This document shows positions 3,545 to 25,802 of a DNA stretch of 40,021 bases, one piece after another. A model generated the notes under the pieces. It was not told the origin of the DNA, searched no databases, and saw only the letters and a program-made list of their open reading frames with translations. The first letter of the stretch is position 1. Each line of letters opens with the position of its first letter. The stretch is from Pelomyxa schiedti. Taxonomy: Eukaryota > Protista > Evosea. A program made the translations under genes and the position numbers. The stretch covers positions 1-40,021 of the forward strand of contig JAHLWZ010000361.1 in assembly GCA_020536535.1 (NCBI GenBank), in the 5' to 3' direction.

Positions 3545-6500
3545 ATGACATCACCACTAACACTACTGTCATACGATGCAATGACAGCACCACCAACACC
3601 ACTGTCAGACGATCAACGCGTGGCCATGATGCTCGAAGCGTGCCGGCGTGTCCCGGTCATGCCCGAGTTTCCGTCACCCACGTGGGACATCAACACTCAC
3701 TTCCATGGTATTAGAGAAACCATGCTTCACATTGCGTGCTCGGGCGGGGACGAGTCGGTTGTTAAGCGGCTCCTCGATGTGGGTGCATCACGCAACCCCC
3801 CGATCGACCCAAACTCAATCGACAAGTATGGTGATACGCCACTGTGTTACGCTGCTTGTTGGGGCAAGGAGGCAGTGGCGAGGATGTTGGTGGCGAGACC
3901 AGATGTGGATGTGAACAAGGGGTGCCCACTGGTCATCGCATGTAGTAGTTGCAGAATGGGTGTGGTGGTGGCGTTGCTTGAGTGCCCACGTGTGGATGTC
4001 AACTTGGTGGTGCAAATAATAGAAAAGCTTGGGGGTCAAACAGCACTGCTCGCAGCTTGTGAGCGGGGATTCGTGGAAGGGGTGAAGGTTCTGCTCAAAG
4101 TCAATGGAATTGACACAAACTGCAAAAACAGAGACGGTGAAACACCACTTGATGTGGCAACAAGATGCAAATTCACTGATATCTGCAACCTCTTGAAGGA
4201 TCACAGATCTCAATCCTCAAGGCCCACCACTGTAAAGCAGCTGAAGAGTAACCCTTCACATCAAATATTAACTTTGCACACACACACATCACTCACACTT
4301 TGTGTTCAAAAGGAGAACTCACAGAACTGAATGCGCGAATCACACAGTTGGAGGATGAAAACGCGAAGAACCTGAAGCGTCTCCAGGATGAAAGAGAATG
4401 CAGATACGTCACCCAACAAAGGTTTCGTGAACTGCAACGGAAATGTTTGTGCCCCCTTCTCCTTTCCTTCCTTCCTTTTCCTCCCTTTGGAGATTGCACT
4501 TCTTCTTTTTTTGCTTCTGACACTTGTTCTCAATCATCAATGTGAACAGATCAAGGGAAACAGAATTCAGAAGTGTGTGTTTGTTGTTGGTCTTATGATA
4601 ATAATATTAATCTCTTTTGACGCATTCCCTCCTTACAGATGGAACTGCAAAGGTTGCAAGAAAAAAGCGTGTTGGACATGACTGCAAAGAACAAGGGTTT
4701 TTCATACCTTTTCTTTCTTCTTGTTTCAATTTCAAAAAAGTAAACTCCTTTGCTCACCCCCCAAACCCTTTTTTCCCTTCTTTCAAAACAGAGCTCATGG
4801 AACTGGAGGCACACATCACAACATTGGAGGAAGAAAGTGCAAGGAACCTGAAGATCTTTTGTGACGAAAGAGAGTCTGAACAACAAAGACTTCGTGATCA
4901 CCAACACTGTATGTGTTGGAGTCAACACCCCTTTTTCAACCTCCCACGCATACATAACATAAGCCACACTCTTCATTATTCTAACTGTCAAGCCAGACAT
5001 GAATCACGTGATGTCACATGTTGAACAAGGAGATGGCTCATGGCGCAACATTCTTCTCCCTGAAAACAACAGCCACAACAACAAGCACTGCAAGCCATCA
5101 AAAATCAGGATTGCCTTTGAGGAATTTGCCTCTTTTGATGAAATTGTGTGTGGCGTCTGTCCTCTTCAAATGGTGCTCTTTCCTCTCTTGCTTGACTTGA
5201 AACCTCCTCTCCTTTCTCGTTTGATTTGTTTCTCACTCTGAAACACAGGTTGTGAAGCTCATTGTTTCAAGGAAGTTTGGGGTGGAACCATCTCAGCAAC
5301 TCATTTTCATTGGTCCCGAAAACAACACCTCTGAAGAAGTGCTGATGGATTCATCCATAACCTTTGATGACATCATTCAACAACAACAACAAGGCAACAG
5401 CAGCACGGACAGAGTTGTTGTTCAATTCCAAGTGCGAATCAAATCAACGGTGTCAATACAAGAGACAGACCTGAAAGTTGTGTCCACACTTGGATCTGGA
5501 TCGTATGGAACTGTTTTCAAGTGCACCTTCCTTCACAACACCGCAACCACAAGCACTTTCTCCTCCTCATCGTCGTCATCATCAGAAACAACGTTTGTGG
5601 CAGTAAAATCGCTTCACGAAATCATCAAGTCTGAGTTCAACATCACACAATTTCAACAGGAAGCTCTGGTGAGTGAGATGGGTGAGGGGGGGGGGGTTCG
5701 TTTTCTTTTCTCTCTGAGTTTGAAAAAATTCCACTCAGAAACTAACTAACACAAAACTCACAGATTTCATCGAGGTTGAGGCACCCCAACATTGTGAGAT
5801 GCCTTGGAACGTGCGTCACGAGCACAGGGTCACTCTGGATCGTCTCTGAACTCATGGAATTGAGCCTCAGACAGCTCCTTCATCATGTTTGTTTTGTTGC
5901 TCCCGCCTTAAAATATATCTATCAATTGCAGAATCTCAATACACACACGCATTCAACACAGAAAACATTGACATTCATGGAAGTTGTTGCAGTCTCTTCA
6001 GGGATTGCCAAAGGAATGACAGCACTCCACATGTTTGTTTCTTTATTGATGTCTTCTAATTCCTTCTTTCTGTTGTTGACCAAAACATTATGTGCCATCA
6101 CCTCCTTCCATGATTGATGACAATTCAACACAGGAGGAATTTCATGCACCGAGACCTGAGCAGCAACAATGTTCTCCTGGATTCTTGTGGAATTCCAAAG
6201 ATTGCTGATTTTGGTGCTGTTATTCCTCATGTCACAACGTTATAACTAAGCATTATCATCATAATTTGTAACTTGTGCGTGCGAATTGCAGGAGTGTCGA
6301 GAGCTCTCCCAACCAACAGTGCTGGCACTGGCACCGCTCTCCTTCGTACTTTCACGAATGGGGCTGGAACACCAGTTTACCTGTCACCACAGATGCACAC
6401 TCGTCACTACGGAATTAAAGGTTGGTGGAAAAGTGTTCATCAGCACATACTTCACACTGATCATCAACCACCTCTAGGTGACATGTGGGAGTTTGCAGTT

Positions 6501-7195
6501 CTGTTGAGTGAAATTCTCAGAGGCACCACACCAGATACCATTGTTCCAAAGGCTGCCACTCAGATTCTTGAGTTCATCAGAGTCCAGAGAACTCGGCTGT
6601 CACCCACGGAAATTGCCGGTTCGTCGTTGCGCAAAAGTCTCCCCCCTTCACTCACTGTGACTTACAACACAAACATACAGAGGTGGACCGGCTTTGCACT
6701 GATGCTGGAGATTATCCCGTTGTGGAGTGCCTCATCCGGAGGAATGCAATCATTGAGGCACTGCGGTTGGACCAAGAGTTGAACAACACGCACCCTGCGT
6801 GCGTTGGTCAGTTCTCACTCGTTGTTGAGTCTTGCCTCTCAATCCTCGGTTCGTTCTTCCCCACCTGACATGTAATTAAGATTGTACTATATGTCGTCCA
6901 CCCAACTCACCAACACACACACACAGAGATCAACCGGCCATCGTTTCCGGTGATTGAGAGAATGCTGATGACATGTGCCGAGATCGTGTTCGCGAATTCT
7001 CGCAACACCACCACCGCAACAACCGCCGCCAACACCACCGCCAACGCTCCCATGATTGACAACCGCGACGTGGCCGCACACATCACCACGTGCCTCGCAA
7101 ACATGGCCGCGTCGTTCCCTGGCCGCCGCAACAACAACCTTCACACATCTTCATCTCCATCGTCAACAACAAGCTCTTCCAGGTCGTCGTCATGA
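3545..7195 (+). CDS. Ankyrin repeat - coiled coil - ubiquitin-like - TKL-type protein kinase (paralog K1; ankyrins in one uninterrupted exon)
   Basis: Ankyrin motifs ETMLHIAC, DKYGDTPLCYAA, GQTALLAAC, NRDGETPLDVA; coiled-coil exons; Ubl-like VKLIVSRKFGVEPSQQLIFIG; kinase GSGSYG, VAVK, FQQEA, HPNIV, HRDLSSNN, DFG (split by an intron), GTPVYLSPQ, NRPSF. GT-AG introns throughout; stop at 7193-7195. Confidence 0.9.
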
Positions 7196-7520
7196 AAAAC
7201 AAAAACGCAAGCAATGTTGTTAGATACTCCCACAAAGTCACACACTTGTGAATGTGTTTGTGTGTGGTGTTGTGGGGGTGAGTTGATCATCATGACGAAG
7301 ATGTTGTGTTGTTGTTGCGGCCAGGGAATGATACGGCCATGTTTGCGAGGCACGTGGTGATGTGTGCGGTCACGTCGCGGTTGTCAATCATGGGAGCGTT
7401 GGCGGTGGTGTTGGCGGCGGTTGTTGCGGTGGTGGTGTTGCGAGAATTCGCGAACACGATCTCGGCACATGTCATCAGCATTCTCTCAATCACCGGAAAC
7501 GATGGCCGGTTGATCTCTGT
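6923..7520. repeat. Inverted repeat formed by the near-identical last exons of convergent K1 and K2 (arms about 6923-7138 and 7308-7520)
   Basis: Both encode IERMLMTCAEIVFANSRNTTTATTAANTTANAPMIDNRDV.AHITTCLANMA.SFPGR with only a few mismatches. Stop codons are 94 bp apart. Confidence 0.9.
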
Positions 7521-10500
7521 GCGTGTGTGAGTCGGGTGGAAGGCATATTATGAGATTAACTTAAGTTTAACAGCTATATCGATGGACCCACTTGTATATT
7601 CTTGTCCAGGCCCCCGTATTTTACGCAGTTGTTATTTAAAATGGAGCGGTGGTGGAGGGGGGAAATAACGAACCGAGGATTGAGAGGCAAGACTCAACAA
7701 CGAGTGAGAACTGACCAACGCACGCAGGGTGCGTGTTGTTCAACTCTGGGTCCAACCGCAGTGCCTCAATGATTGCATTCCTCCGGATGAGGCACTCCAC
7801 AACGGGATAATCTCCAGCATCAGTGCAAAGCCGGGTCACCTCTGTGAGGGTGTGTGGTTGTGAGTTACAGTTGGGAAGGGAGAGACTTTTGCACAACAAC
7901 GAACCGGCAATTTCCGGGGGTGCCAGCTGAGTTTTCTGGACTCGAATGAACTCAAGAATCTGAGTGGCAGCCTTTGGAACAATGGCCTCCGGTGTGGAGC
8001 CCCTGAGAAGTTCACTCAACAAAACTGCAAACTCCCACATGTCACCTTTGAGATGATGGATGATCAGTGTTTAAGGGTGGTTGGTATGGTTTGAACAATT
8101 CAATTTTCCGAACCTTTAATTCCGTAGTGACCAGTGCGCATCTGCGGTGACAGGTAAACTGGTGTTCCAGCCCCATTCGTGAAAGTCCGAAGTGCAGTGG
8201 CAGCACCATTGCTTGGGAGAGCTCTCGACACTCCTGCAATTCACACACACAAGTTATTACATTATGATGGCACCGTGAAACATTGTTGAGGCATAAAAAT
8301 AAGAAAATACCAAAATCAGCAATCTTTGGAATTCCACAAGAATCCAGGAGAACATTGTTGCTGCTCAGGTCTCGGTGCATGAAATTCCTCCTGTGTTGAA
8401 TCGTCGTCAATTATGGGATGGGAGGAGATGGCACAGAAAAAAAATCTGGTCAACAAACAAAAAGAGGGAACCGAGAGGAACATCAAGAAAGAAGGAAACA
8501 AACAAACATATGGAGTGCTGTCATTCCTTTTGCAATCCCTGAAGAGACTGCAACAACTTCTGTGAATGTCAACTTTTTCTGTGAAGTGTGTGTCGATATT
8601 TATATATTGCCAATTGAGTGTGAGCCCAACAAACATGATGAAGGAGCTGCCTGAGGCTCAATTCCATGAGTTCGGAGACGATCCAGAGTGACCCTGTGCT
8701 CGTGATGCACGTTCCAAGGCATCTCACAATGTTGGGATGTCTCAACCTCGATGAAATCTGTGTGTGTGATGGTGAGTTTCAATGAATGAATTGTGTGCAT
8801 TTCAAGATCAATGAGAGAGAAAACGAAAGTCGCTCACCAGAGCTTCCTGCTGAAATTGGTTGATGTTAAATTCACTCCTTATGATTTCGTGAAGTGCTTT
8901 TACTGCCACAAATGTTGTTGTTTCTGATGATGATGAGGAGGAAGATGTTGCTGCTGCAGTGTTTTTGTGGAGGAAGGTGCACTTGAAAACAGTTCCATAC
9001 GATCCAGATCCAAGTGTGGAAATAACTTTCAAGTCTTTCTCTTGTATTGTCATGCTTGATTTGATTCGCACTAGTATTGACACAACAACTCCGTTTGTGC
9101 TGATGCTGTTGCCGCTGTTGCCTTGTTGTCGTTGTTGAAGAATTTCTTCCAAGGTTCTGAATGGATCAGTCAACAGCTCCTCCGAGCACTCATCTGAACC
9201 AACAATGAAAATGACTTGTTGAGTTGGTTCAACCCCAAACCTCCTGGAGATGATAAGTTTCACAACCTGTGTTTGTTCGTTTGGTTTGTTTCAAGGAAAA
9301 AGAGGGGCTTCATTCAAGGGAGGGGAAAGGGCACCATTTGAAGAGAACAGGATCCACACACAATTTCTTCGAAAGAGGGAAGATCCTCAAACACAACCCT
9401 GACTTGTGATTGCTTGCAGTTGTTGCAGTTGTTGCAGTTGTTGTCGCTGTTGTTTTCAGGGAGAAGAATGTTGCGCCATGAGCCATCTCCTTGTTCAACA
9501 TGTGACATCACGTGAGTGGTGTCTGGCTTTACAGTTAGATTGATTGTGTGTAGATATCGCGTGTGTGTATCGTGTGTGTGTGGTGGTTGAGAATGGGGGT
9601 GTGTTGACTGAACACAAACAGTGTTGGAGATCACGAAATCTTTGTTGTTCAAGTGCTCTTTCGTCACAAAAGATCTTCAGGTTCTTTGCACTTTCTTCCT
9701 CCAATGTTGTGATGTGTGCCTCCAGTTCCATGAGCTCTGCTTTTGTAGTAAAAAGGGAAAAAAAAAAGGGTTGGGATGACCAATGAGTTCAATCAGTTGA
9801 ATTCGAAACAAGAAGAAATAGAAAATGGAGGAGGAGAAAAGGTGTTGACAAACCGTTGTTCTTTGCAGTCATGTCCAACACGGTTTTTTCCTGCAACCTT
9901 TGCAGTTCCATCTCAATGGATGATGTGTTGTCAAAAGAGAATATTTTTATTATTTATTATTGTTATTGCAAGACAAACAACAAACACACACTTCTGAATT
10001 CTGTTTCCCTTTATATTCATCCACATTGATGAGAGGTGTCAGAAAAACAAAAAAAAAAAGAAGCAATCGCTGAGAAGGGAGGAAAAGGAAAGGGGAGGAG
10101 TGGGCACAAACAGTTCTGTTGCAGTTCATGAAACCTTTGTTGGTCGACTTGTCTGCATTTTCTTTCATCATGGAGAAGCTTCAGGTTCTTTGAATTTTCA
10201 TCCTCCAATTGTGTGATTCGTGCCTTGAGTTCTGTGATCTCATCTTTTTGAAAACAAAGTGTGGGGAGTGCCAGTGCACAAAGTTTGAATTTGGTTTTAG
10301 GAACAGGGAGGGGGGTGGGGGAATTTGTCTCAACTCTTCTGCTGTTTTGCCTCGATTTCCCAGGAGGCTCTTCCTTGTCTCCCAACTGTTTGTGGTGCTT
10401 GCATTGATTGTGGTTGTGATGAGGTGAGTGATGAAGATGATGATGACTTGTTTGCGGTGGAGGGTGGTGGTGGGTTGTTTTGAGGCAATGAGAATGAAGA

Positions 10501-12758
10501 CTCCAGCAAGTCTTGGGCAACAAGATTGTGGGGTTGTTGTTGTTGTTGTGCTATTTTGGGAGTGGTGGAGACTGTCCGCGTTGCAATTGTTGTTTTTGCT
10601 GTGGCAGCAGGGATTTTGCGACACACAGATTGGAACAGTTGCTGGACTTCATCATTCTGGGAGTACTCAACAGCTGTTTTTCCCTCTTTGTTCTGTTCCA
10701 ACAGGAAAATTATAACACATAACAAGCAACACAGGGAAAAACACCACACCTTGATGTGAGTGCCAGTGCCCACACAAGACAGAAGTTGTTTCACAATTTC
10801 ATGATTTCCCCTTCTGGAGGCAATGTGAAGTGCGGTCTGAGAGAAAGATGAAAATTAAGTTTAAGTGTGTCAAACAACAGACAAAGGAAAGGAAACACAA
10901 AGGACATTCACATACATCACCCTTTTCATTTGACAGAGACCCCCAAGAAAAGTAGAGATGACATTGAGGAATGCAAAAAAAAAAAAAAAAAAACAAGCTC
11001 ATACTTCCTGAAAAAAAAAAGAGTTAATTAATTAAAGAAAGAATCAAGGTGAGTTCATGTACAATCTGGTGGCCAGTAGTGTAAAGCAGTAAAAATTTCC
11101 CGAAAAGTTAGAAACAAAAAGCTTGGCAGGTTGTGTGTTTACTTACTCCCTGAGATATGGCAGCCCAAAAAGAAAGAAAGAAAGTGTCACAGAAAATTGA
11201 AGCAATAAAAGGGTGGGTTTACACACATACTAAAGCATGCCATAAAGACATGGAGAGAGATAGAGCAAAGAAAAGAGTGACAATTGAAGCAAGTCATAGA
11301 AATCGATGAATAACAACGCCATAAAAGGATGGGTTTACGCACATGCTAAAGCATGCCACAGAAACAGAGAGCGCAAAGCAAAGAGTGAAAATTGAAGCAA
11401 GTCATAGAAATCGATGAATAACAACATAATAAAAGGATGGGTTTACACACTCCCTGAGTTTATCACAGAGAGCAAAGCAAAGAGTGAAAATTGAAGCAAG
11501 TCATAGAAATCGATGAATAACAACGCAATAAAAGGATGGGTTTACACACACGCTAAAGCATGCCATAAAGACATAGAGAGAGATAGAGCAAAGCAAAGAG
11601 TGAAAATTGAAGCAAATCATAGAAATCAATGAATAACAACGAAATAAAAGGATGGGTTTACACACACGCTAAAGCACGCCATAAAGACATGGAGAGAGCA
11701 AAGCAAAGAGTGAAAATTGAAGCAAGTCATAGAAATCGATGAATAACAACATAATAAAAGGGTGGGTTTACACACATACTAAAGCATGCCATAAAGACAT
11801 GGAGAGAGATAGAGCAAAGAAAAGAGTGACAATTGAAGCAAGTCATAGAAATCGATGAATGACGACACAATAAAAGGAGGGGTTTACACACACACTAAAG
11901 CATGCCACGGAGACAGAGCAAAGCAAAGAGTGAAAATTGAAGCAAATCATAGAAATCGATGAATAACAACGCAATAAAAGGATGGGTTTACACACACGCT
12001 AAAGCATGCCATAGAAACAGAGAGAGCAAGGCAAAGAGTGAAAATTGAAGCAAGTCATAGAAATCGATGAATAACAACACAATAAGGGTGGGTTTACACA
12101 CATACTAAAGCATGCCATAGAGAGAGCAAAGCAAAGAGTGAAAATTGAAGCAAGTCATAGAAATCATGAATAACAACGCAATAAAAGGATGGGTTTACAC
12201 ACAGTCTAAGGCATGCCATAGAGAGAGCAAAGCAAAGAGTAAAAATTGCGCAATAAAAGGATTGAGATTATGAGTACATACAGTCTCCCCCTGGATTTCA
12301 GGTTTTTAAAGGAAAGAGAATGTAAACCTATAATCAGGATGGATAGTAGTAGTATCACACACAATCTGTTTGTGAAGCAAGAGATACAAGTGTGGTTAGT
12401 GACGAGGCACATCAACCAGTGGCGTACTTGAGAATTGACATCAATATTCATTGACAACAGGAATTCGACACACCGTGGTTTCTCCCCCCACGTCGCTGCA
12501 TGCAACGCTGTCTGTGGTGTATGTGTGTGTGCAAAAAAACCGAATTGTTGATGCTTGTGGGGAAAAAAAAACATAGAAAAAAAAAGATTTGTTCAACATT
12601 CACACCACTCGTTCGTCATTAACGGAGTTTAGCAGGCCGCGGTCACCGGCCAACAGACGCTCCAGTGCGTAGGTGTTGCCGCCATACGCGGCATCGAACC
12701 ACTCAGTGGGTCCGACGCGTGGACCCCCCGTGGGTGAAGTTGTTGTTGCTGCTGCCAT
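7290..12758 (-). CDS. Ankyrin repeat - coiled coil - ubiquitin-like - TKL kinase (paralog K2) with an expanded microexon array
   Basis: ATG 12758 MAAATTTSPTGGPRVGPTEWFDAAYGGN..LLNSVNDERV; exon 2 TALHAATWGEKPRCVEFLLSMNIDVNSQ ends 12428; exon 3 TALHIASRRGNHEIVKQLL starts 10836; then NKEGKTAVEY, coiled coil, Ubl and kinase motifs as in K1; stop at 7290. Confidence 0.9.
10916..12365 (-). other. K2 microexon array: 14 single-codon exons, one 9-nt (or 3-nt) exon and one 6-nt GD exon
   Basis: AG-exon-GT units in transcript order: ATT 12363-65; GGGGAGACT 12282-90; ACT 12203-05; TAT 12102-04; CGT 11996-98; TGT 11892-94; TAT 11776-78; CGT 11666-68; CGT 11550-52; GGA 11451-53; CAT 11343-45; TAT 11227-29; GGA 11147-49; ATT 11063-65 (weak donor gtacat); GAA 11005-07; GGTGAT 10916-21. 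Donors are gtgtgt, gtgcgt, gtaagt, gtatgt or gtatga. Confidence 0.8.
11195..12250. repeat. Tandem repeat of about 100-120 bp units (about 9-10 copies); each unit is one intron plus one 3-nt exon
   Basis: Recurring core gagtgaaaattgaagcaagtcatagaaatcgatgaataacaac..ataaaaggatgggtttacacacNNNctaaagcatgcc. Confidence 0.95.
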
Positions 12759-13517
12759 AGGTGGGCGGCCAGTGGGGTGAGAACCAAAAGATCAAAAAAA
12801 AAAAAAGATCTGGTTCTGTCTAGAGAAGAAGCCAGAACCATTTTTTTGGTGCTAACACCAAGACAAGGGTGGATTGGGTGGCTAATACCAAAATAAATAA
12901 ATAAATCCCTAATTTGTGGCTGGCAAAACAAGTTTTAGTGTGGGTGATTGTTTGGGGGTCACCAAAAAAAAAAGGTGCCCCCTCCTCATCAGTTAACAGG
13001 TAGTGACGGAAGAACCAGCAGCTGGGTATCCTTTCGAGTGGTGAGTATGATGGATGGAGTAAAAGCAAGAACATGATACAACTAGAGCATGCAACAAAGC
13101 ATGCCAAACAACAACAAGCAACCTCCACTTGAAGAGAAACAGAGGACGCGGAGATACCGGCATGATAGTGGCATGGTGATTACACTACAAGAGTTACTGC
13201 AGAATCGCGTTCTCAGCCGGCACTGAAGCGGACATTTCCGGCACTGGTAGCATGCATACTGCCAACAGGGATTAGCACAGAAATGATGGGAATCATGCAT
13301 ACAAACGTTCATACAAATGCAGCGGGAATGCTAGATATGTAGAAGCTTCGAAGCTCGGAAATTCATTCCAAAGCTATGTGGCGTTAGTATTCCGCTTGGT
13401 TGTATTTGTTTTTATTGGCTTGTATTTACATTTCATTAAGCAGTTAATTCTATTGGGATTAATTGCACGCACGTGGTAAAAAAGACAGGGGGGTGGGTGG
13501 GTGAGTGGAAAAGAAAC

Positions 13518-14295
13518 CTTGATGTTGGTGGGAATCCCCACAGATGAGAGAAGTCGTTGTTTCCCCATTTCAACCTCCCCTCCTCTGGAGGCTATGTGAA
13601 GTTCAGTTTGAGAAAGATAGCGCGATAGAGACAGAGAGATGAAAATTAAGAGAGGATGCTCATGCATAAAAAAACCCTTATTGTTTTTTATTGTGTTATT
13701 CATCAACTTATTTATTAACCTCAATTTATTAATAAATAAGTTCTCTCCAACTTCAATTTTCACACCTCACTTTTCAATGATTAACTCACCCCCAACGCCA
13801 CTAACTATTTACTTTATTGGCATTGTTCATCATGAATTTCTTTGACTTGCTTCTCTCTGTTTCTTGAATGAAAGGGTGAGGTTAATAAATAAGTTGATGA
13901 ATAACACAATAAAAAACAATAAGAGTTACACACGAACTGGGGAGGGAAAAAAAAGGAAGTTAGAAAAATGACTAATATATAATGCAAACAAAAGGGTTGG
14001 AGGATACAGCGGAACGCGCCGCAAGACAGAGTAAGTGAAGTGAAAATCGAAGCAAGTCAGAGAAGGGAAAACATGAACGTTTTACACACATCCTGGTGGC
14101 TCAGTGTGAGGATGTGCACAACGAACAAACAATACCAAACAATACCAAACAATACCAAACAAACCTGTAAATTGGCATCGACATTCGGGAACAGGAAATC
14201 AACACACTGTGAGCTCCCATTAAACCCAGCATCGAACCACTCGTAGGGCCCGACCAGCTTGTGCTTGTGACCCCCGTCGATGCCGTCGACGATGG
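13518..14295 (-). pseudogene. Degenerate ankyrin-microexon paralog (A5)
   Basis: Exons 1 and 2 are fused in register (EWFDAGFNG|SSQCVDFLFPNVDANLQ). Microexons GAT 14090-92 and TTC 13934-36 are intact; the middle unit lost its AG; the exon 3 acceptor is mutated to caa (TELHIASRGGEVE); no obvious ATG. Confidence 0.7.
13677..13923. repeat. 47-bp perfect inverted repeat (13677-13723 / 13877-13923) bracketing an inverted piece of the microexon region
   Basis: cttattgttttttattgtgttattcatcaacttatttattaacctca and its reverse complement. Confidence 0.85.
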
Positions 14296-14345
14296 TGGTT
14301 CCGTGATCGAATTGAATCAGCCGAAAAACCAAGCTACTGTCTCTT

Positions 14346-17236: not shown

Positions 17237-18292
17237 TCATTCCTCACTGTCACTGCTGTCACTCGACGACGATGATGGGTTGTTTGGAGCAGGGGGTGGT
17301 TGTTGGTGTGTTCCTTTTGTTTTTGCTGGGAACAGCTGCCCCACTTCATCATTGTAGCGGGTAGCAAGAGCTGTCTTTCCATACTTGTTCTGTGATGTGA
17401 TTAACCCCCACATGCACACGCACGTGGTAAAAGTCACGGGTGGGTAGTGGAAAAGAAAAAAAAAACCTTGATGTTTGTGGCAATCCTCACACATGAGAGC
17501 AGTCGTTTCACAATTTCAACCTCTCCTCCTCTGGAGGCTATGTGAAGTGCAGTCTGAAAGGGGATAGAGAAAATTAAGTGTCAAACAACAAAGAAAGGAT
17601 GCTCATACATCGCCCTTTGATTCAACAGATTTGATTCAAGAGAGAAGAATAAAGTGAGGTAAATAAGTTGATGAATACTCAATAAAAAAAAGGGTTACAC
17701 ACGAACTGGGGTTATAGGAGGGAGAAATGAAGTCAGAGAATTTTCAATTCAATGCAAATAAAAGGGTTGGAGGATACATGCTAAACGCGCCGCAAGACAG
17801 AGCAAGTGAAAATCGAAGCAAGTCAGTCAGAGAAGGGAAAACAGGAAAGGTTTTACACACATCCTGTGAAGTATGTGTTTGTCAGTGTGAGAATGTGCTC
17901 AACAAACGAACCTGTAAATTGGCGTCGATATTCACTGACAACAGGAAATCAACACACTGTGAGCTCCCTCCCCACGTGGCTGCATGTAATGCTGTCTGTG
18001 TGTTGTGTTGGTATACAAAGCCCACAAAACGAAAAACAAAAAGTTAATATCATCAGTTCATAGAATCGTAACAAAAAATATCCAATAAATTAATTATTAT
18101 GAAAATTGCACGTGTGCACACAACAACCTCTCCTTTTCGTTCGTTTACAGAGTTGAGTAGCCCTGGGTCGAGCGCCAGCATCGCTTGCAACTTGTCGGCG
18201 TTGCCATTAAACGCAGCATCGAACCACTCGTCGGGCCCAACACGTGGCCCCGGCCCGCTTGTGCTTGTGGCGCTCGTTGATGCTGCTGCCAT
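17237..18292 (-). CDS. Short ankyrin-only paralog (A4) with four microexons and no kinase
   Basis: Exons 18292-18128 (MAAAST..LNSVNERKGE), 17995-17912 (TALHAATWGG..ANLQ), microexons D/H/F/GD, 17553-17467 (TALHIASRGG..TNIK), 17389-17237 (NKYGKTAL..SDSEE*). Confidence 0.8.
17609..17863 (-). other. A4 microexon set: GAT (D) 17861-63, CAT (H) 17778-80, TTC (F) 17703-05, GGCGAT (GD) 17609-14
   Basis: cag GAT gtgtgt; tag CAT gtatcc; cag TTC gtgtgt; aag GGCGAT gtatga. The joined product ANLQDHFGDTALH matches the ankyrin consensus N-x-x-d-x-x-G-x-T-A-L-H exactly. Confidence 0.85.
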
Positions 18293-22243: not shown

Positions 22244-25200
22244 TTATGATGATGATGAGTGAGTGTTGGGAGGGCGGCCGGGGAATGATGCGGCCATGTT
22301 TGCGAGGCACGTGGTGATGTGTGCGGTCGCGTCGTGGTTGTCGCTTGTTGTTGTTGTTGATGTGGCGAAGTTTGTTGCGGAGGTACCGAAACTTGTGAAT
22401 ACGATCTCGGCACATGTCATCAGCATTCTCTCTATCACCGGAAACGATGGCCGGTTGATCTCTGTGTGTGTGCTGGTGAGTTATGTGGTGATATGGGAAT
22501 ATTAATTTACATTTAATCGCTGTTTGATAGTTACCACTTGTATTATTAGCTTCTCCACTTCACCCACCCCCCTTTGTTGTTGTCGCAGTCACATTAATTT
22601 CAAATGGATTGGGGTAATTCCAAGGAGGGAAGGAACGAACCGAGGATTGAGAGACAAGACTCAACAACGATTGAGAACTGACCAACGCACGCAGGGTGCA
22701 CGTTGCTCAACTCTGGGTCCAACCGCAGTGCCTCAATGATTGCATTCCTTCGGCTGAGGCACTCCGCAACGGGATAATCTCCAGCATCAGTGCAAAGCCG
22801 GTCCACCTCTGTGTGGGTTGTGAGTCACAGTGAAAAGGGAGAAAACTCCTTTTTATTGCATGCAGACAACGAACCGGCAATTTCCGGGGGTGACAGCTGA
22901 GTTCTCTGGACTCTGATGAACTCATGAATCTGAATGGCAGCCTTTGGAACCGTGGCCTCTGGTGTGGTGCCTCTGAGAATTTCACTCAACAAAACTGCAA
23001 ACTCCCACATGTCACCTGGAGATGGATCATCAGTGTGAACAGTATATGATTTTCTAAACCTTTGATTCCGTAATGACAAGTGTGCATCTGCGGGGAAAGG
23101 TAAACCGGTGTTCCAGCCCCATTTGTGAAAGTACGAAGTAGAACCGCACCATTGCTTGGGAGAGCTCTCGACACTCCTGCAATTCACACAAGTTACAAAT
23201 TACGATGATGTTGTGACATGAGGAGTAACAATACCAAAATCAGCAATCTTTGGAATTCCACAAGAATCCAGGAGAACATTGTTGCTGCTCAGGTCTCTGT
23301 GCATGAAATTCCTCCTGTGTTGAATCAGTCGTTGGAGATGTAGTCAACAAAAGAGAAAAAGAGAGATCATCAAGAAACAAACATGTGGAGTGCAGTCATT
23401 CCTTTCGCAATCCCTGAAGAGACTGCAACAACCTCCATGAATGTCAAACTTTTCTGTGGAGTGTGTGTGAGCCCAACAAAGAAAGCGGGAGGAGGAAGGT
23501 GGGAGCAACAAAACAAACATGATGAAGGAGCTGCCTGAGGCTCAATTCCATGAGTTCAGAGACGATCCAGAGTGACCCTGTGCTCGTGATGCACGTTCCA
23601 AAGCATCTCACAATATTTGGGTGCCTCAAGCTCGATGAAATCTGTGTGTTTGTGTATTATGTGAGTTCAAACCACCGTCCCACTCACTCACCATAGCTTC
23701 TTGCCGAAATTGGGTGAAGTTGAATTCACTCCTTAATACGTCATGAAGTGCTTTTACTGCCACAAACGTTCTTGTTTCCGGTGACAATGACGAGGAGGAG
23801 GAAGTGGTTGCAGTTACGTTGGGAAGGAAGGTGCATTTGAAAACAGTTCCATACGACCCAGACCCAAGTGTGGACACAACCTTCAGGTCTGTCTCTTGNN
23901 NNNNNNNNNNNNNNNNNNNNNNNNNNNNNNNNNNNNNNNNNNNNNNNNNNNNNNNNNNNNNNNNNNNNNNNNNNNNNNNNNNNNNNNNNNNNNNNNNNGT
24001 GGTGCCGTGTTGTGTGTGGTTGGTTGAGAAAGGGGAAGGGGATGGTAATTAGTGAGCAGAACAAACAGTGTTGGAGATCAAGAAATCTTTGTTGGTCTGA
24101 TGCTCTTTCATCACTTTCTTCCATCAATGTTGCAATCAAGTCCCCCAGATCTTTTGTTTTTTGTTTTTTTTTGGAAGGAAAAAAGAGGGGAATTGAATTT
24201 GAACGACTAAAGAGAAAGAAATTTAAAGACCCTTGTTCCTTGCAGACAAGTCCAACAAATTTGCTTCTTTCTGTGGCAAGATGTGTTGAAAGAGACAGAT
24301 AGTACCATTCAGAAACAAACACCTCTTCATTCTGTTTCAGGTTCCTTGCGTTTTCTTCCTCCAATTGTCTGATACGGGCCTTCAGTTCTGTATTCTCTTC
24401 TGTTTCACAAAGTGTGAGGTGTGAGATGATGTTTGAATGTTTTAAGAAGAGGGGGTTGCTCTCAACTCATCTGTTGCTTTGCTGTGATTTCCCAGTTTCG
24501 TTGGATGGTGATCATGTCACCACCTTCTTCAAGTGTGTTGGATACCACATTGCAGGTCATGCTGGTGTTCAGTGTTCTTGTTGTAGTCGCTGTTGGTTGT
24601 TGCTGTAATAAGGTGGGTGATAATACTGGCGATGGTGGCTTGTTTGGAGCAGAGGCTGGTCGCGGTGGAGGGGCCACTCTCTGCGTTGTTGTTGATGTGG
24701 CTGTGAACAACTGCCGCACTTTATCATCGTTTGAGCACTCAAGGGCCGTTTTCCCACTCTTGTTCTGTGCCCAGCACACACGTAAATCACAACACAGTCA
24801 GGGGGGCAGGCATGGGTGAGGGCGGGGGAAAACCTTGATGTTGGTGTCAATCCCTACATATGAGAGAAGTTGCTTCACAATTTCAACATTTTCTGCTCTG
24901 CAGGCAATGTGAAGTGCAGTCTGAGAGTGGATGGAGAGATGAAAATTAAAAAGTTGTGTCAAACAGCAAGGAAAGAAGACACACATCACCCTTTCATTCA
25001 AAAGAGCCCAAAAAGAGATATGATATAAGCTGGGAGCACAAGTCAAGAAAAAAAAGACCATACTGCCTGATGAAAAACAAAAAAAAATAGAAGTGGATAA
25101 ACATATACCAAACACGCCAGACAGAGCCAAGGCAACGAGTGAATTGATGAGAATATTCAAAAAGAGTTGGATACGCACATTCTAAACAGGCCAGAAAGAA

Positions 25201-25802
25201 CAATTCAAGGAGTGAAAATTGAAACAAGTCAGTGAAATTGATGAATAATGAAAAGGGGTGGGGCCTTGGAAGATACACACATTCTAAACACAGAGTGAAG
25301 AAGAGAAAAATGACAAGTCAGAAGGAAACAGGAAGGTTTTTACACACATTCTGTGAAGTGAGAAAACAAGTTTGTTAGTGTGATGAGGACAAGTAGTGCC
25401 CAACAACAAACAAACCTTGGCATTGACGTTGATATTCATTGACAACAGGAACTCAACACACTGCGTTCTCCCACTTGCAGTGGCCGTATGCAACGCTGTC
25501 TGTGCGCGTGCCAATTATCAGCTTGGATGGAGTCCAAAACAAAAAAGGAGTGCAAGAAATAAAAAAAAAAAAAAATATTATGTGCGAAAGGTAAGAGGTG
25601 GGTGGTGCCCAAATCGATTTTATTTATTTTCTAGGCATAGGCACATAAAACCAACCGCATGATTCCACAGGTCTACGGAGTTGAGCAGCCCGGGGTCGGC
25701 GGACAGCATCCCCCGCAGCTTGTCTACGTCTCCAGATTGTGCGATGTAGAACCACTGATTGGGCCCAACCGGCGCGCGTCTCGTTGCGGCCGATGCAGCC
25801 AT
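22244..25802 (-). CDS. Ankyrin repeat - coiled coil - ubiquitin-like - TKL kinase (paralog K3); the Ubl region falls in gap 23899-23998
   Basis: ATG 25802 MAASAATRRAPVGPNQWFYIAQSGD; exon 2 25499-25416 TALHTATASG..NVNAK; microexons; exon 3 from 24920 TALHIACRAEN; NKSGKTALE; kinase GSGSYG, VAVK, HRDLSSNN, DFG, YLSPQ. Confidence 0.88.
24985..25350 (-). other. K3 microexon set: AAT 25348-50, AAT 25281-83, AAT 25179-81, GCA 25064-66, GGTGAT 24985-90, plus one decayed unit near 25100-25115
   Basis: cag AAT gtgtgt; tag AAT gtgtgt; tag AAT gtgcgt; cag GCA gtatgg; aag GGTGAT gtgtgt. Product NAK-N-N-N-A-GD-TALH. Confidence 0.8.

Follow-up and report, generated by a model that had tools for sequence, protein, structure and literature searches.

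Single-codon microexon arrays predicted to encode a hypervariable ankyrin loop in a Pelomyxa schiedti gene family

Results

An ankyrin-kinase locus with a microexon array

The DNA analyzed here, called the window, is a 40,021-nt stretch of the Pelomyxa schiedti genome (contig JAHLWZ010000361.1). The gene of interest lies on its minus strand. Exon 1 (12606 to 12758; 51 codons, phase 0) carries the start codon and encodes an ankyrin repeat that caps the N terminus, together with a first hairpin of the normal 5 residues; it ends at the same junction that is spliced in the RNA of a paralogue, L029. Exon 2 (12428 to 12511) encodes an ankyrin repeat core, TALH...NSQ, which covers positions 4 to 30 of Pfam Ank, aligns with DARPins, and ends in phase 0 at NSQ/GTACGC. 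Exon 3 (10750 to 10836) encodes a second core, TALH...HIK, starting in phase 0 at CTCAG/TALH, and exon 4 (10335 to 10692, the 3′ end being predicted) adds the C-terminal capping repeat and a low-complexity linker. Exons 2 and 3 both score above the curated Pfam Ank cut-off.

Downstream on the same strand are coiled-coil exons and protein kinase exons (7500 to 10250, minus strand, boundaries approximate) with GSGSYG, VAVK, HRDL, and DFG motifs. The catalytic K, HRD, and DFG of the kinase are thus all found in same-strand exons, and pieces of it match the Pfam kinase model. This agrees with the original prediction of a kinase linked to the array, the linkage being read from same-strand exons and not from one transcript. 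No signal peptide was found in exon 1 by eye, where a polar stretch and the ankyrin cap form the start; therefore, a cytosolic location is probable for the proteins. Two coiled-coil kinase genes that are related to each other stand tail to tail at 4300 to 7500 (plus strand) and 7200 to 10250 (minus strand), and the plus-strand copy follows a three-repeat ankyrin exon without introns (3545 to 4330).

The 1,591 nt between exons 2 and 3 resolve into 17 GT..AG introns of 55 to 113 nt and 16 units without a stop: fourteen of 3 nt, one of 9 nt, and one of 6 nt, all with canonical splice sites. Their order, I, GET, T, Y, R, C, Y, R, R, G, H, Y, G, I, E, GD, is the one that had been proposed for the stretch from NSQ to TALH, in phase 0 throughout. 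The series opens with a 5′ stem, a 3-nt ATT (Ile) unit at 12363 to 12365, a first unit being present in 20 of 20 paralogues, and a 9-nt Gly-Glu-Thr unit at 12282 to 12290, mostly G-x-P in the family. The variable core (11227 to 12205) follows with ten 3-nt units, each within a tandem unit of 100 to 116 nt: T (12203-12205), Y (12102-12104), R (11996-11998), C (11892-11894), Y (11776-11778), R (11666-11668), R (11550-11552), G (11451-11453), H (11343-11345), and Y (11227-11229). Inclusion of these ten units in mature RNA is suggested by selection. The conserved 3′ stem consists of GGA (Gly; 11147 to 11149; 18 of 20 paralogues) with a GTAAGT donor, ATT (Ile; 11063 to 11065; I or T in 18 of 20), GAA (Glu; 11005 to 11007; E, Q, or A in 19 of 20), and a 6-nt Gly-Asp unit (10916 to 10921; 20 of 20), which supplies the G-x before TALH. 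All of these units are on the minus strand.

In the 1,591 nt, 13 matches to the strict pattern YAG-N3-GTnnG were found, compared to 0.16 in Markov shuffles (maximum, 3 in 2,000), a contrast that overstates independence because positions 11256 to 12224 form a tandem repeat with a 100- to 116-nt unit and the ten central units are therefore copies and not independent events. The same pattern with exon lengths of 2, 4, 6 to 8, or 10 to 12 nt was found 0 times in this stretch. Four of the units (three CGT and one TGT) have an alternative reading as 1-nt exons whose donor is just as good.

The array coincides with a gap in the ankyrin fold. In the alignment with DARPin 5LEB, exon 2 corresponds to residues 49 to 75 and the following TPLH begins at 82, which leaves five residues of the hairpin unaccounted for in the large exons, as had been claimed. 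That the units encode this hairpin is borne out by a short paralogue in the same window (17609 to 17863, minus strand), in which exactly three 3-nt units, D, H, and F, plus GD make up a canonical 5-residue hairpin.

A family of paralogues with conserved stems and variable cores

Searching the 52.4-Mb genome (5,337 contigs) with exon 2 gave at least 27 paralogues. Microexon units occupy the gap between exons 2 and 3 in 20 of the 20 copies that have both exons assembled. Eighteen of these have the long layout, which is a stem of I and a 9-nt unit, a core array, and then G, I, E, and GD. In this layout, the opening 3-nt unit is usually Ile and the 9-nt unit usually G-x-P; the latter was located by pattern in 17 copies and by eye in one. 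Each of the six stem units (the opening unit, the 9-nt unit, and the final four) is conserved in 17 to 20 of the 20 paralogues. If read through in full, the 18 long-layout copies give loops of 11 to 33 residues that are rich in Y, G, F, L, D, I, and H. Most of the 318 core codons specify Y, G, F, L, D, I, H, R, S, or P, a composition similar to that of antibody CDR-H3 loops.

Both short-layout copies sit in the window. One is the D, H, F, GD copy, whose gene (17237 to 18292, minus strand) stops soon 3′ of the ankyrin repeats and has no kinase; in the other (24921 to 25415, minus strand), exons 2 and 3 flank the units N, N, N, and A, followed by GD. A decayed short-type paralogue is also present (13500 to 14300, minus strand), with exon 2 partly deleted and one unit lacking its AG. 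An intron of this copy contains a 51-nt inverted repeat (13673 to 13723 and 13877 to 13927, 98% identical), which shows a local inversion. Elsewhere in the genome, another array with a seemingly truncated exon 2 (L056, G000:C530:204800-207300) is likely a pseudogene between two other copies.

The downstream partner of the loop module is either a kinase or SAM plus U-box domains. The latter is the case in L029, L031, L045, and L048 (C328, C479, and C530), in which SAM and U-box-type domains, and not a kinase, are fused to the variable ankyrin module. The public gene models that were found start at exon 3 and lack the microexon units. A protein search of 1.8 billion sequences matched four Pelomyxa models, all without the hairpin. 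Two word-indexed protein searches, which are blind to loops of other lengths, returned the query alone, and a metagenome scan with the exon 2 alignment gave one unrelated ankyrin and no array.

Spliced microexons in paralogue RNA

RNA was available as contigs from two runs on one sample in the same study, and these were aligned to paralogue L029, which has a short array. A 352-nt contig from run X1 matches L029 with no mismatches as exon 1, exon 2, ATT, the 9-nt exon, and the unspliced intron downstream of it (178, 85, 3, and 86 letters), so that every letter is explained. In the genome, ATT stands next to neither of these junctions, and the three letters match the L029 unit at 848 to 850; thus, a 3-nt exon was spliced on both sides, and the acceptor of the 9-nt exon was used. 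In a second contig, from another paralogue, the 6-nt GD exon is joined to exon 3 and the preceding intron is retained. These junctions substantiate the original prediction that such units are real microexons, for one 3-nt exon and for the 6-nt exon. They also show splicing running stepwise from both ends, observed for the 3-nt ATT exon and the 6-nt GD exon and probably extending to the core. Core arrays appear in the RNA contigs only in unspliced form, with contigs extending into array introns, and mature RNA across any core array was absent from the contigs listed (paralogues, one sample).

The idea that three units are picked so as to keep a 5-residue hairpin does not fit the L029 contig. 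The I and 9-nt exons occur together in RNA and, with GD, exceed five residues.

Selection and splice-site constraint in the core

Several features of the core codons are not those of neutral repeats. First, the differences are concentrated in the codons themselves. In 117 pairs of units whose flanks differ by no more than 6% (mean, 3.2%), codon positions 1 and 2 differ in 48% and position 3 in 5%, compared to 4 to 13% for six control triplets taken from the flanks. The amino acid was changed in 82 pairs, and a silent change was found in only 1; related units are not independent in this test, so that P values should be read with caution, and the effects are large all the same. The proposal that the array is a diversification device gains from this result, and from these codon comparisons the core appears to be a codon-by-codon hypervariable loop under diversifying selection.

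Second, the splice sites hardly change. When units were located by anchors outside the splice sites, AG and GT were kept in 182 of 182 units at the usual spacing and in 10 of 11 others (192 of 193 in total), the remaining one having a damaged donor. This extends to units that look dispensable. Of 288 units, 213 are redundant, meaning that the amino acid is already present in the same array; an extreme example is an array with nine CAT units. Among these 213, 0 acceptor losses were found compared to about 14 expected if they were dispensable, an expectation that assumes neutral flanks and counts related units as independent.

Third, certain motifs are scarce in the arrays. The codon GTT, which would give a zero-length exon, is absent compared to 12 expected, and inside the array introns AG is depleted (85 compared to 414 GA). 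Stop-codon units are seen once compared to 2.8 expected, which is weak evidence of avoidance and is given no weight here. The single case is a TGA core unit in L053 (G000:C219:12194-12209), upstream of intact-looking kinase motifs.

Finally, 182 of 275 array introns have a branch-like motif 40 to 62 nt upstream of the acceptor, and distant branch points are known to help the inclusion of mini-exons. Donor and branch are about 50 nt apart, a distance as great as entire introns in these genes; in ordinary introns, branch-point positions are too noisy for a clean contrast with the array introns.

Turnover of arrays in DNA

A good example of array turnover is the closest paralogue (C1194), whose exons and stem introns are 93 to 97% identical to those of this locus and whose core has seven units, HLYLLGF, compared to ten here, TYRCYRRGHY. 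Units are 85 to 95% similar within their own array and about 70% similar to most other arrays, and the arrays have higher-order periods that point to block duplications. This turnover at the DNA level is the diversification that is actually shown. Judged from about 30 gene copies, codons appear to change, or to be gained or lost, fast enough for an antibody-like variable loop.

In L013 (G000:C2052), the terminal Gly unit with its GTAAGT donor occurs twice, once ahead of ten more core units; this is either a block duplication or a misassembly. L030, L008, and L054 (C706, C3085, and C2695) contain blocks of the same core units in a different order, and it is possible that they represent alleles, different nuclei, or recent copies of one array.

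Discussion

It is very probable that these genes contain a hypervariable loop encoded by microexons, whatever the mode of splicing. How the core is read can be explained in more than one way. The best explanation overall, which we hold with about even confidence, is that most core units are included, that diversity is made mainly in the DNA, and that the loop senses variable ligands. The family would then consist of cytosolic sensors with an ankyrin module, a coiled coil, and then a kinase or SAM/U-box domains, in which the second β-hairpin is replaced by one long hypervariable loop encoded codon by codon. Conserved microexons would provide the fixed stem (I and GxP on one side and G, I, E, and GD on the other), and each core codon would lie in a repeat of about 100 nt supplying its donor, distant branch point, pyrimidine tract, and acceptor. 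Splicing would proceed stepwise from the large exons inwards, including, by extension, the core. Most core units would probably be retained, giving a loop of up to 19 residues at this locus compared to 5, and any skipping would stay in frame and may add isoforms to some degree. The intron padding may allow unequal crossing-over or short gene conversion to add, delete, or replace single codons without a frameshift, with selection, as the codon comparisons show, favoring amino acid change. The most likely role of the loop is to bind ligands that are variable and foreign or non-self, and to switch on the kinase or ligase. In favor of this explanation, the units of the shortest paralogue are exactly the five missing residues, and the lack of acceptor loss in redundant units likewise favors inclusion of all or most units. 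The TGA unit and the one damaged donor count against it, since both are easier to bear if units can be skipped.

Combinatorial skipping is a serious though less probable alternative. Here the stem would be constitutive and each transcript would carry an ordered subset of the core codons, giving hundreds of loops per gene on top of the turnover in DNA. All core units are 3 nt in phase 0, and a TGA unit is tolerated in one array. The RNA contigs enter the intron after the 9-nt exon and cover array introns, and none is listed on L029 introns 826 to 896 or 1465 to 1677; mature forms could be too varied to assemble and would drop out, as this model predicts. A precedent exists in the brown-algal ROCO repeat exons, which are both shuffled and alternatively spliced (PMC11378527). 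However, no isoform was seen among the RNA contigs listed, slow stepwise splicing accounts equally well for the retained introns, and the almost complete preservation of splice sites among redundant units suggests that every position matters. The possible scale is also smaller than first thought. A ceiling of 2^15 patterns, which would give 19,166 peptides, had been calculated with the stem units as optional. The stem is conserved across the paralogues, and I and the 9-nt exon occur together in RNA. At most ten core units are therefore variable at this locus, and ten optional units have a ceiling of 1,024 patterns and 640 distinct peptides.

A mutually exclusive choice, in which each transcript takes one or a fixed few core codons and loop length stays constant, is improbable and the least favored of the three splicing modes. 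It would suit a fixed stem flanking duplicated cassettes with uniform donors, the stronger GTAAGT donor of the last Gly unit, and arrays that vary in length without requiring loops of varied length. Redundant units that have lost no acceptor argue against a Dscam-like choice of one unit, however, and with about 50 nt from donor to branch, steric exclusion is not implied. Very improbable is an inert core, an intronic minisatellite derived from a real microexon-intron unit and spliced out or retained with only the stem exonic; the core is indeed a tandem repeat seen only unspliced in RNA contigs, but its variation centers on codon positions 1 and 2 and is nearly all nonsynonymous, its splice sites are invariant, AG is depleted in its introns, and GTT is avoided.

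Exon-wise shuffling in candidate receptors is already known from brown algae, where ROCO (LRR) and NB-ARC-TPR proteins are candidate immune receptors with exon gain, loss, and alternative splicing (PMC3341825, PMC11378527). As in those families, a variable ligand-binding part is wired to a signaling domain with one module per exon, recent paralogues are near-identical outside the variable part, and rearrangement goes with diversifying selection. The ROCO pattern of turnover (PMC3341825) is matched here at one codon instead of one repeat. In brown algae, an exon is a whole 72-nt repeat and repeat number varies, whereas in Pelomyxa an exon is one codon, the scaffold is fixed, and one loop varies; the effectors are a kinase or SAM/U-box and not ROC-COR or NB-ARC. 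Schistosoma micro-exon genes likewise have series of tiny exons whose lengths are multiples of three, which makes in-frame variation possible, although their exons are mostly 6 to 81 nt, their introns 0.1 to 5 kb, and their proteins secreted (PMC10526429). The Pelomyxa 3-nt exons, in contrast, stand in tandem units of about 100 nt with introns of 55 to 113 nt and are confined to one loop of a folded domain that is probably cytosolic.

Arthropod Dscam1 also has tandemly duplicated cassette exons between constant exons that encode a recognition surface. Each of its cassettes encodes a half or a whole Ig domain, and RNA pairing makes their use strictly mutually exclusive; duplicated cassettes between constant exons are common to both systems, and the redundancy of the Pelomyxa units argues against exclusivity. 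DARPins are an ankyrin scaffold varied at the hairpin, and in LoopDARPins an elongated loop replaces the β-turn. Both are engineered, as synthetic libraries; the LoopDARPin is cited as ref. 59 in PMC10542815. The same hairpin variation and elongated loop are predicted here in a natural gene family, in which, unlike in DARPins, the first hairpin and the helix positions vary between paralogues only. Neither the single-codon unit nor the restriction to one loop matches any of the families tested, and a literature search, which covered subscription journals thinly, found no description of such single-codon exon arrays.

These arrays have implications beyond the locus. When every codon is padded with an intron, single amino acids become cassettes that can recombine without risk to the reading frame, and 10 to 25 consecutive 3-nt exons are a natural case for a direct test of how the spliceosome defines exons below its own footprint. 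Standard annotation misses such arrays, as the public models beginning at exon 3 illustrate. A single variable loop on a fixed ankyrin scaffold, alternative effectors, tandem copies, and pseudogenes fit a sensor of variable ligands, for which symbionts, prey, or parasites are a putative source. In its boldest form, which we offer as unlikely speculation, the family would be a natural LoopDARPin repertoire, with one-codon exons rewritten in DNA (perhaps also between the nuclei of what is a multinucleate cell) and then combinatorially spliced into hundreds of antibody-like loops per gene, coupled to kinases or ubiquitin ligases, for anticipatory recognition in a free-living amoeba with bacterial endosymbionts. 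Overall, the arrays point to a fast-evolving recognition system in an amoeba.
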